Program-made: the position numbers and the translations under genes | Part shown: positions 18,673 to 35,942 of the stretch, piece after piece | Numbering within the stretch: position 1 is the first letter of the stretch | Layout of the letters: each line of letters begins with the position of its first letter | Notes under the pieces: generated by a model | The model's database searches: none | Seen by the model: the letters and a program-made list of their open reading frames with translations, nothing else | What the model was told of the DNA's origin: nothing | NCBI RefSeq assembly: GCF_032062105.1 | Contig: NW_026928905.1 | Coordinates: 124,001 to 188,000 of the forward strand | DNA length: 64,000 nt | Source of the DNA: Saccostrea cucullata | Taxonomy: Eukaryota | Direction of reading: 5' to 3'

Positions 18673-21600
18673 TCACATCTTCTCCTGGGTCTCCCTAATG
18701 GCCTGCAGGAAATCCATAGTGTTGAGATAATGCTCAGGCTTAACACTGCAAAAAACAAATACAATCATTACCACAAAACAAGGAAATTACACAGGCAACA
18801 TCATACATGCAATCAAGCATGTATTTCCCTAACATGCACATTACCTCAATAATCTCAATGATATTAAAGAGATTTATTAGAGACTGTGATTTCAGTATAT
18901 TTTATTAAATATATCATAAATAAAATCCTCTTACTTCTTCAGCCCATATATACAGCCTGCCAAATCCTTGGTCATTTTTCCACTATCTACAGTGTCTACA
19001 CAGGCTTTTTCCAACTTTTGTGAAAAGCTGTTGAACAAAAATTTGTTACATTATTGTAATGAAATCCATTGATTTTTCTTTTTTTCAGAAGCATACATGG
19101 CATGTATTTTACACATTATTGCACGGACAAAACATTCATTACAAGGTAACAGCTGCATATTCATTAATATAATCATAAAACTGCTCAGCTTATACAAATG
19201 TAACATATGTCAACTTATAAAATAAATGTTCTTACACAACAAGGTCCTGGTTTCCATCCAGTTTGCCTCTGTGTTCTAATCCTCTGGTCCAGGCATAAAT
19301 ACTAGCCACCGGGTTTGTACTGGTAGGGTTTCCCTAAAGATGCATGTATATTATTTTAATTATACATATCAACATCTTTTCATAAAATGACATTTAAGAT
19401 CTGCACAAACATACTTGCATTGAATTTACTGTGGATTTCTAACTTAAATTATTATTAAAAGGACTTTTTTATCCATTAACTACACTAATGGTGAACTTGC
19501 TTATAATGAATCAACACATAAAGCGTTGTGGTTATTATTCCCCCCGGCTTTTAACTATATTGTGAAATATTTACGATATGATGATAATCTCAATCCCTGG
19601 CATTCTTATAAACATTTTTGGTTTATTCTACTTATTCACATTTTTAAAAATCAGGTAGAAAAAGTATATATCAGGAGTTGTACCTTTTGATGTTCCCTGT
19701 AGTGCCTTGTCACGGTTCCGTGAGCAGCCTCGGACTCAATAGTTTTTCCATCAGGGCAGACAAGTACACTGGTCATAAGACCCAATGAACCGTAACCTGA
19801 AATATGAATTAAACATGTACCACTGTCATTGAACTATTTTAAATAGTAATATTAAGCATCTATAAAAAATCATTTCAAAAATATAACATCTGGTATTCAG
19901 TACAATATTTTACATATCAAAAATAGACAGAATTACGCATCGAAATTTAATCTGCATTTGCAAAATATAAAAATTAAATTAGACAAATATTGGTGTAGGA
20001 GTATTATGAAATAAATTAAATGATTTCAAAATGTATATTGGTAAGATTTTTTGGTACAAAACTAGTAGAGGTAACAAAAACTCCTTCTATGTCATTAGAA
20101 AGATGACATGTCGTAGTTGTTACCTTGGGCGACTACGTCCGACTGTACGTCTCCGTCGTAGTTCTTACAGGCCCACACAAATCCTCCATCTGACTTGAGG
20201 GCCTGAGCCACCATGTCGTCAATCAGGCGATGCTCGTACCAGATCTTCAGCTCATCAAACTTCTCCTTGTAGCCTCTGTCAAACAGATCATACAAAACAT
20301 GGAGAGATGCTCTAATTCAGAGTATCACATTTACTTTCAAAATTTATCTGCTCAAAGGTTTGATCGAATACTATTGATGAAAACTTGAAAAATGTTCAAC
20401 TTACTTGGTTTCGAAGATGTCCTGGAAGATATCCTTGAATCTTCCGTCATATCTCTTCAAAATGGTGTTCTTTGTACTCATGTAAAGAGGCCATTTCTTC
20501 ATAATGGCATACTGGAAACATGTGTGGGCAAAGTCACTGATGCTCTGGAAGTGAAAGAAGAAAACAATGAACCATTATCTATTCTACATCCATTTTGTGT
20601 TGTTAAACTCACTGAACATACAAACTGATATCAAGTCACACTGTTTCATGGAAAATGAAAAAAAATCTGGCAAGCAAATGACAAACAATAAAATTGCTAA
20701 CCTCGTCTGTATTGTACATGGCCATGGTACAACCTCCACCATTTTTAAATTCAAACACGGTTGTCCTTTGCTCCTGTCCTCCTTCAGGTGTGTAGACTAG
20801 TTCAATTTTACCATTTCCAGGCACTACCATGTCAGTGGCTTTGTACTGTCAAAGAGAAACAAAGAGGTCAGAATACATGTTCTTTACAGAGGTCAGAAAA
20901 CATCTTCTTTAACTCTCACACAATCAAATTCCATAAAAAAAAAAGAAAAAAGTAAGCACATTTAGTACATCAAAGTGAAAAACACAATTTTGTCAAAAGC
21001 TATTGTTATAAGATAAAATTCCAGAAAGGAAAAGCAGCTTTTTAACAATTTTACAGAGTTATCCTTCTTTGCATAAAGCCTTTTCTATGTAGCAGCAATT
21101 TTCACTGACCTGGTCACCGTGAGCATGACGACCAATCACAATTGGTCTCGTCCATCCGGGCACTAAGCGAGGAATTTTCTGACATATGATTGGCTCTCGG
21201 AATACTGTTCCTCCAAGGATGTTCCTAATGGTCCCATTTGGACTCAGCCACATCTTTTTGAGCTTAAATTCTACAAATCAAAAACAAAATTCTAAACATT
21301 AAAAAAAATCATTTTTAATTGTCAATAGCTAATATTTGAGAAAAGATCACAAGAACTTCCAACAAAACACATAAACTACCTTCTACACGAGCTTCATCAG
21401 GAGTGATTGTTGCACATTTGACAGCCACATTGTATTTCTTGGTGGCCAGGGCAGCATCAATGGTGACCTGATCATCAGTTTGGTCTCTGTATGGCAAGCC
21501 CAGATCGTAATACTTCAGATCAACATCAACGTATGGCAAGATCAACTATTTCAATCAGAAAATGTTTGTAAGTGCAGAGTAAATAAATCAATATCTTAGT

Positions 21601-22363
21601 GACAACCCTAGGAAATGGTGACTTGGTTTATTCATTATTCATGAGGCTTGAAAAGTCATTATACATTATTTCATCAAGTCTGAATAAAAGACACCTAAAA
21701 AATCGCAGAAAATTATTCTTTCTTTGTAAAAGGGAATGTCAAACTTAGGATGTCTCCTTACAGTTTCCTTAATCTTTTCCCAGATGATGCGGGTCATCTC
21801 ATCACCATCCATCTCAACAACTGGGTTAGCCACCTTAATTCTTTTGGTTCCATCTGCATTGATTCAAACAAAAAAATTAAACCGTAATTATGCAAATTTT
21901 ACCCTCATTTAACATATTTATTTCCTCACAACAGTCATACTACTTTTAAAAGTGATATGCATGGTAATTTTCAAATTCTAAAAAAAAAAAAAAGTAGATT
22001 AAATTAAGAAGAGGAAAAAATCACTATATATCATAATTTACCATTTTCAAATAATTGGAAATAAGCTTTTTAATTTGCATCAGAAACATGATAGAAGTGT
22101 CTTTTTCAAAAAGCATTTTAAGCAATCATTTTTGCAAAAGAAAACCGTTATGACCTCCCCTATTCTTATCCCAATGTCAAACTGACTTATCGAAGACATA
22201 GCACTTGCAGCCTATATTCGATTTATAAATGGCAAATTTTCATATTAAAACACTCACAATCCCTCTGTTGTGTTGCATTTAAAGCAACAGGCGCTGCAAA
22301 CCGCTGTAATTTGCTACCAGAGCGCCAAAAGAGACGACCTGCGTTTACGACTGAACTTGCCAT
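18673..22363 (-). CDS. IDH2: Isocitrate dehydrogenase [NADP], mitochondrial (~445 aa, 11 coding exons)
   Basis: Exons (-): 22363-22258, 21853-21762, 21545-21380, 21270-21110, 20845-20702, 20544-20405, 20275-20124, 19796-19684, 19333-19236, 19027-18935, 18745-18673. All are GT-AG and frame-consistent (1338 nt). Motifs: [57 protein letters not shown] (IDH2-type), [36 protein letters not shown]. The N-terminus ([22 protein letters not shown]) is Arg/Ser-rich and lacks acidic residues, like a mitochondrial presequence. Confidence 0.97.
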
Positions 22364-35700: not shown

Positions 35701-35942
35701 TTAATACCTAAAATATATGCAATATGAGGTGTAAAATCTGTGTAGTTCAAGTCACTTCATTGTAATTTTTTTTTGTACTTTTCCCGTAGGTGATTGTGAT
35801 GAAGAGAACTTTGGGAGTGGGATATGCAGCAGTAGACAACCCAATCTTCTTCAAACCCAACACCAGCATGTTGCTTGGGGACGCCAAGAAGACCTGTGAT
35901 GCCTTACTGTTAAAGATCAAAGAACATTACGGAGAAATTTAA
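23747..35942 (+). CDS. NNT: NAD(P) transhydrogenase, mitochondrial (~1069 aa, 16 coding exons)
   Basis: Exons: 23747-23872, 24611-25103, 25594-25781, 25982-26146, 26380-26584, 26757-26824, 27099-27327, 27678-27908, 28181-28360, 31492-31599, 31806-32051, 32493-32681, 34156-34307, 34600-34864, 35233-35444, 35790-35942. These total 3210 nt and are frame-consistent. Motifs: [121 protein letters not shown]. Confidence 0.97.
24003..24471. mobile_element. MITE (469 bp) with 17-bp TIRs in an NNT intron
   Basis: TIRs are CAGGGGTGTGCAATTAC (24003) and GTAATTGCACACCCCTG (ends 24471). TAGCCCGAC subterminal motifs are repeated at both ends. The TSD is unclear (AAACA/AAATA). Confidence 0.8.
25316..25470 (+). 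pseudogene. Degenerate partial duplicate of NNT exon 25594-25781 in the preceding intron
   Basis: Near-identical to 25627-25840 (GGTCTTGCTGCTATTGGTTCAGCCAAAGCAATGGGGGCCATTG...GCTCGTGAGCAAATTG) but with deletions. It keeps the donor CAG|GTACTG and lacks the original acceptor. Confidence 0.85.
28333..28895 (+). repeat. 45-bp minisatellite built from the NNT exon/intron junction
   Basis: Unit CTGTCCTCACAGACAACAAGCAGAATAG|GTAGGAATATAGTCAGA. About 11 copies counting the exonic one; later copies are 44-58 bp variants. Confidence 0.95.
28960..31406 (+). mobile_element. Non-autonomous Helentron (HINE-type) element with (TCTG)n microsatellite and internal 166-bp satellite array
   Basis: 5' stem-loop TTTTAGCTCACCTGAGCCGAAGGCTCAAGTGAGCT; (GTCT/GTCC)n at 29020-29082; 166-bp tandem units (register 30361, 30527, 30693...); 3' GCTCAGGTGAGC plus palindrome GGCCCATGGGCC. 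This matches the architecture described for oyster pearl/Cg170-carrying elements. Confidence 0.9.
29442..30322. mobile_element. 881-bp TIR element nested in a satellite monomer, 6-bp TSD
   Basis: TIRs are CAGGGTTCTCCAT / ATGGAGAACCCTG. The direct repeat ATTCAT lies at 29436-29441 and 30323-30328. Subterminal (C/G)ACACAGTAA motifs are present. Confidence 0.9.
32814..34024. mobile_element. Probable non-autonomous TTAA-target DNA transposon (Kolobok-like)
   Basis: TTAA|ACACCCAATTTT (32810-) versus AAAATTGGGTCT|TTAA (-34028): an inverted terminal match with one mismatch, flanked by TTAA on both sides. Confidence 0.55.
34025..34155 (+). repeat. Four imperfect ~33-bp copies of the NNT acceptor-proximal intron sequence
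   Basis: TTAATTAAGGAGGTACACCCCTTTGTGTTTGAC is repeated. Only the last copy is followed by AG and the exon (34156). Confidence 0.8.

Follow-up and report, generated by a model that had tools for sequence, protein, structure and literature searches.

Divergent IDH2 and NNT genes of the oyster Saccostrea cucullata belong to an ancient bilaterian gene pair

The genes for the mitochondrial NADP-dependent isocitrate dehydrogenase (NADP-IDH), IDH2, and for the NAD(P) transhydrogenase, NNT, stand head to head in the oyster Saccostrea cucullata, within a stretch of 64,000 nucleotides (contig NW_026928905.1, positions 124,001 to 188,000, assembly GCF_032062105.1) hereafter called the window. The same pair is found in protostomes and in deuterostomes and therefore, by parsimony, was already present in their last common ancestor, roughly 550–600 million years ago, if not earlier. 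It is an ancient bilaterian 5'–5' pair and not an oyster adaptation. Function-linked co-regulation from one short bidirectional promoter region is the explanation of its retention that we favour, with a probability of about 0.6.

The question whether NNT and IDH2 form a coupled cycle or are two separate sources of NADPH has been debated largely on the basis of mammalian biochemistry. Conservation of their head-to-head link from flies to starfish provides gene-neighbourhood evidence, a kind usually restricted to bacteria. Neither human, in which the genes lie apart, nor Drosophila, which to our knowledge has no NNT, reveals the link. The locus offers a testable promoter of about 300 bp, natural controls in leech, human and sponge, and predictions for expression atlases.

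Gene models in the window

The minus-strand gene forms a single open frame in which every intron has GT–AG boundaries (Table 1). Its N-terminal 40 amino acids, encoded in exon 1, include seven Arg or Lys and one Asp or Glu, as in a basic presequence, and the full set of NADP-IDH motifs is present. Exon 4 scored 103.7 bits against mitochondrial IDH2 chains and about 91 against cytosolic IDH1, whereas a second exon scored likewise was neutral. The presequence, together with closer resemblance to IDH2 than to IDH1, identifies this partner, on sequence grounds, as IDH2. Database searches used single exons or proteins retrieved from databases; joined models served for frame checks and local alignments.

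IDH1 was considered as the partner of NNT and rejected, as exon scores and identities favour IDH2 and the IDH1-type gene is located on other contigs (C20558 and C12436/C16479). The latter is present in two copies, 73% identical to the window IDH2 and with 98% protein identity to each other; one of its exons favours cytosolic chains and another is neutral. The two copies, on separate contigs, are probably retained haplotypes of the 1.17 Gb assembly.

NNT, on the plus strand, encodes a presequence followed by NAD-binding, membrane and NADP-binding domains on one polypeptide (Pfam AlaDh_PNT_N, AlaDh_PNT_C, PNTB_4TM and PNTB). It is single copy, with one match in the assembly, and its nearest relative is the sister NNT of Crassostrea angulata (92.8% protein identity). 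The original prediction had described two adjacent, divergent and non-homologous genes with ATGs 1384 bp apart, and about 400 bp between the IDH2 ATG and the donor of a likely non-coding NNT first exon. Recomputation from the gene models returned the same 1384 bp and a donor distance of 403 bp, and the two proteins belong to different Pfam families and are non-paralogous.

Table 1. Coordinates of the features discussed, in positions of the window
Feature	Position	Strand	Basis and remarks
IDH2 coding region	18673..22363	-	11 exons, 445 aa; exon 1-2 joint 21853/22258 in reads
IDH2 5' end	22361..22380	-	read ends pile at 22361-22368; start inferred, not cap-mapped
ETS/GABP-like word GGAAGT	22390..22398	+	just upstream of IDH2 start; position shared by four bivalves
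AT-rich core without transcription	22421..22626		reads and GC content; single copy in genome
E-box-like CATGTG and reverse CCAAT box (ATTGG)	22637..22665	+	same position in oysters, mussel, scallop and limpet
Non-coding NNT exon 1	22687..22766	+	joint and contig piece; C. angulata transcripts; 5' limit approximate
NNT 5' UTR intron, 953 nt	22767..23719	+	read joint
Double nuclear-receptor half-site, ERR-element type	22901..22915		kept in four bivalves; unique in window
NNT coding region	23747..35942	+	16 exons, 1068 aa; exon joint 23872/24611 in reads
N stretch	39286-39426		window sequence

Distribution of the pair among animals

Named full-length NNT proteins were taken as the starting point of a neighbour survey, 10 kb flanks were fetched, and species were picked before their neighbours were known. 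The sample was drawn from molluscs, annelids, a nemertean, a crustacean, an insect, an echinoderm, a hemichordate and sponges; a region search directed at NNT of cnidarians or chordates yielded none. IDH2 and NNT were head to head, with no annotated gene between them, in 10 of the 11 other bilaterians whose flanks were examined. An Iso_dh gene lies directly upstream of NNT on the opposite strand in the molluscs C. angulata, Mytilus edulis, Pecten maximus and Lottia (first-coding-base gaps of 2337, 1828, 1672 and 1376 bp), the polychaete Capitella (1254 bp, counted from a presequence exon absent from the annotation), the nemertean Tubulanus (1513 bp), Daphnia magna (1284 bp), the starfish Patiria (2083 bp), the acorn worm Ptychodera and the sand fly Lutzomyia. 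ATG gaps thus span 1254–2337 bp in nine genomes including the window, and the orientation is 5'–5' in all 11 genomes carrying the pair.

Every Iso_dh partner of NNT has a presequence-like first exon, and the partners with enough sequence are 74–94% identical to the window IDH2 as against 67–73% to the IDH1-type gene. For two partners the assignment to IDH2 relies mainly on Pfam, length and presequence, since the Lutzomyia locus holds a first exon only and that of Ptychodera 33 further residues. Other neighbours do not recur between species, except for one downstream gene common to two oysters. No IDH2 was found within 10 kb of NNT in the leech Helobdella, in the sponge Ephydatia, or at a further locus whose NNT is closest, among named proteins, to that of Ephydatia. 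Of 80 NNT loci in a metagenome scan none had an IDH, nearly all being too short to tell. Adjacency limited to one species, which the original prediction had named as a ground for abandoning it, is therefore not what the survey returned: the pair is bilaterian-wide.

Coding introns of NNT vary widely among these animals: Ptychodera has none (locus 10001-13216), Patiria one (10001-15672), the molluscs and the nemertean 14–15, Daphnia a different set and the sponge few. The intron-poor genes of Ptychodera and Patiria still face IDH2. Either spiralians gained introns, or introns disappeared while the gene stayed where it was.

The pair is non-paralogous and adjacent in molluscs, an annelid, a nemertean, a crustacean, an insect, an echinoderm and a hemichordate. 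It therefore belongs to the conserved ancestral microsyntenic pairs (CAMPs), defined by adjacency in at least four major lineages, and it shares two characteristics of co-regulated CAMPs, namely 5'–5' orientation in all genomes keeping it and a short intergenic distance. A genomic regulatory block, with a developmental regulator and a bystander, was ruled out, both partners being metabolic enzymes.

In the part of Additional file 4 of Robert et al. (2022; PMC8851819) available to us, microsyntenic block 1163, classed as 'Bilateria novel', lists NNT and IDH2 as consecutive genes of Ptychodera, and its dating to the bilaterian ancestor agrees with ours. The entry is a row of an automated table, without orientation, promoter or function, and the main text of that paper mentions neither NNT nor mitochondria. 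A keyword search of the literature, outside which most subscription papers fall, found no paper discussing the two genes as neighbours. The pair is absent from the main texts of PMC3514665 and PMC13508932 and from the accessible portion of the supplements of PMC2871058. It may well already stand in the supplementary pair list of PMC3514665, because Lottia belongs to that survey. The pair is real and ancient and seems so far to have escaped discussion; its kind is known from HSPD1/HSPE1 and HADHA/HADHB.

Transcripts and the interval between the genes

Reads from three raw poly(A) runs of one study, in libraries of unclear strandedness, and a contig set were mapped over positions 21700-24760. 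A GT..AG splice joint from 22766 to 23720 is covered by 27, 30 and 37 reads in the three runs and is present in one contig set; the predicted non-coding exon 1 of NNT is thus real. An NNT contig begins at 22687, an RNA-seq end and not a capped start, and C. angulata transcripts begin at the matching place. On the other side, read ends pile up a few bases from the IDH2 ATG, indicating a very short 5' untranslated region (UTR). The two 5' ends, as defined by RNA-seq, are therefore about 320 bp apart in the oyster, which gives substance to the short common upstream region anticipated by the original prediction and agrees with bidirectional promoters, in which divergent starts are less than 1 kb apart. 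Both genes are transcribed outward from this interval, and coverage at 22421-22626 is near zero.

A pyrimidine tract followed by AG, resembling an acceptor, is located 10–27 nt before the NNT ATG in 11 of 12 bilaterians compared, the exception being Lutzomyia. This suggests an old NNT 5' UTR intron and true starts that, elsewhere too, are much closer together than the ATGs. Exon 1 also contains an upstream open reading frame of three codons (22746-22757), in frame with the main one in the window; C. angulata keeps it out of frame, and a hidden coding exon was rejected for that reason. In each of the 11 genomes that carry the pair, the first bases of IDH2 are ATGGC, often preceded by a run of A (22355-22375 in the window). 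With the very short 5' UTR, this start is reminiscent of YY1/TISU-type (translation initiator of short 5' UTR) starts.

The core between the 5' ends is AT-rich (GC falls to 23–31%), is flanked by two GC-richer 5' ends and is not a CpG island (CpG observed/expected ratio 0.8, 40% GC). Conservation of the intergenic sequence is clear within molluscs. In an alignment of five molluscs, an ETS-like word is found 28–38 bp from the IDH2 ATG in the bivalves, an E-box-like word with a reverse CCAAT box about 270–310 bp from it in all five, and the exon-1 donor near 400 bp; in the bivalves, NNT intron 1 holds an ERR-type half-site pair some 140 bp from its start. The factor names (ETS/GABP, NF-Y, E-box and ERR) follow resemblance to consensus sequences. 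An unbiased count of position-matched words, which include the exon-1 donor at equal distance, gave five in four molluscs (0.27 expected) and nine in three bivalves (1.27 expected), values reached in none of 500 shuffles in either case.

Explanations for the retention of the pair

The function-linked explanation that we favour would work as follows. One open-chromatin region with ETS/GABP-, NF-Y-, E-box- and ERR-type sites would serve both starts; a break between IDH2 and NNT would therefore damage both genes and be purged. One step further, the pairing may have been favoured since both enzymes draw on one matrix NADP(H) pool and would be induced together by mitochondrial demand, NNT through proton-driven reduction from NADH to NADPH and IDH2 through NADP-linked isocitrate/2-oxoglutarate exchange. 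The cost of a break might be tied to function because NADPH supplied by NNT drives reductive carboxylation by IDH2. The functional coupling assumed at the outset is borne out in the literature: PMC3363418 and PMC8342795 describe the use of NNT-derived NADPH by IDH2 for reductive carboxylation, and the former mentions a proposed substrate cycle of IDH2 and NNT with NAD-IDH (citing Sazanov and Jackson, 1994). The link was severed in the leech and in the lineage leading to human; in a sponge, NNT has a different partner.

Several observations weigh against this explanation. The promoter words form two clusters, one beside each start, and two back-to-back promoters instead of a shared one are therefore possible. 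Motifs are not conserved beyond molluscs in excess of chance, the cross-phylum comparison giving 27 common 6-mers against a null mean of 18 and maximum of 29. Start sites are RNA-seq ends from one species, complemented for NNT by C. angulata transcript ends. The first-coding-base gaps are wide in Ptychodera (3922 bp) and Lutzomyia (8437 bp), and the choice of species from top NNT matches biases the survey toward slow-evolving genomes. Finally, human gets by with the two genes unlinked, as had been stated: 15q26.1 holds IDH2, and NNT lies at 5p12 next to NNT-AS1.

Generic entanglement is a real, if less than even, possibility. Two housekeeping genes would have come early to share a CpG-rich promoter of GABP/NF-Y type, their common NADP(H) chemistry being coincidental; breaks would seldom fall in so short an interval, and those that did would do harm whatever the functions of the genes. 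About 10% of human genes have a head-to-head neighbour within 1 kb (PMC3082894), and 595 ancient pairs are known, mostly 5'–5' and many without a common pathway, of which Lottia and amphioxus retain 448–492, slow-evolving molluscs keeping most (PMC3514665). Vertebrates have lost 84% of bilaterian blocks, so that loss is the rule there (PMC8851819). Moreover, the promoter of NNT may be inherently bidirectional, because NNT faces an unrelated claudin-like gene at 349 bp in Ephydatia and a long non-coding RNA (lncRNA) in human, and chance could produce one tight metabolic match among hundreds of pairs. However, at least seven major lineages, including a dipteran, retain IDH2–NNT, which puts it in the top class (19 of the 595 pairs in PMC3514665 are found in seven or more; the lineage sets differ). 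The partner of NNT is the matrix isoform in particular, one of the very few enzymes acting on the product pool of NNT, and bivalves keep a predicted ERR-type element next to the promoter.

A stronger form of the function-linked explanation, in which IDH2 and NNT would have been kept as an operon-like unit since the bilaterian ancestor because their amounts have to match under one switch (ERR with GABP/NF-Y), is tentative and less likely than not. If true, it would constitute independent evolutionary support for the NNT–IDH2 isocitrate/2-oxoglutarate cycle of 1994, and human NNT-AS1 might mark the former position of IDH2.

A module for hypoxia and reoxygenation specific to oysters or intertidal life, which the original prediction thought plausible, is very improbable. 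In mammalian cells both enzymes have been connected with reductive carboxylation and redox defence, and some motifs are bivalve-specific, but Daphnia, sand fly, starfish and acorn worm are arranged alike, the arrangement being identical in freshwater, terrestrial and subtidal animals; it long predates oysters, and as an origin the module is refuted. An artefact of assembly or annotation, or chance adjacency, which the fragmented assembly (23,869 contigs) and an apparently duplicated IDH1 locus might have suggested, is of negligible probability given the same pair in ten independent public assemblies, read-supported exons and a single-copy promoter.

Other features of the window and of NNT relatives

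Several repeats lie within NNT. A degenerate partial copy of coding exon 3, about 91% identical, lies in the preceding intron (25316-25459); a minisatellite of 43–58 bp units (28333-28825) repeats several times the end of coding exon 9 including its splice donor; and six copies of a 166-bp unit (30323-31320) occupy a mobile-element-like insert in intron 9 (28960-31400), which resembles the oyster satellite/Helitron family. Reads from other copies of a small element with matching ends, located in an NNT intron (24004-24471), accumulate at that site. Further downstream, 41330-42316 on the minus strand encodes a Gly-rich, secreted-looking protein of 328 amino acids in a single open reading frame, with no Pfam match; a homologue, 39% identical, is encoded downstream of C. 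angulata NNT. In searches with the NADP-binding region, bacterial transhydrogenase beta-type proteins of 830–1047 amino acids outscored the query itself, which suggests that they may carry repeated NADP-binding domains.

Comparison with known systems

Human bidirectional promoters are marked by GABPA, NF-Y, NRF1 and YY1 sites (PMC3082894). The oyster interval is like them in its starts less than 1 kb apart and its ETS-like and CCAAT words, and unlike them in its AT-rich core and lack of a CpG island, its sites being predicted from sequence. At human 5p12, NNT also adjoins a divergent, non-overlapping transcript, as in the oyster, but this neighbour, NNT-AS1, is a lncRNA and not IDH2 (PMC7690676); to derive it from the former position of IDH2 would be speculative.

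The closest parallels are the CAMPs HSPD1/HSPE1 and HADHA/HADHB (Irimia et al., 2012; PMC3514665), adjacent and 5'–5' with a short spacer and kept across phyla like IDH2–NNT. Those two pairs are also kept in human, with co-expression shown, whereas the IDH2–NNT link is absent there. All three consist of nuclear genes for mitochondrial proteins. HSPD1/HSPE1 and HADHA/HADHB each encode subunits of one complex; for IDH2 and NNT we know of no complex, and a common cofactor pool alone connects them. The best-known ancient mitochondrial pairs thus unite the parts of one machine, whereas IDH2 and NNT are joined by their cofactor only.

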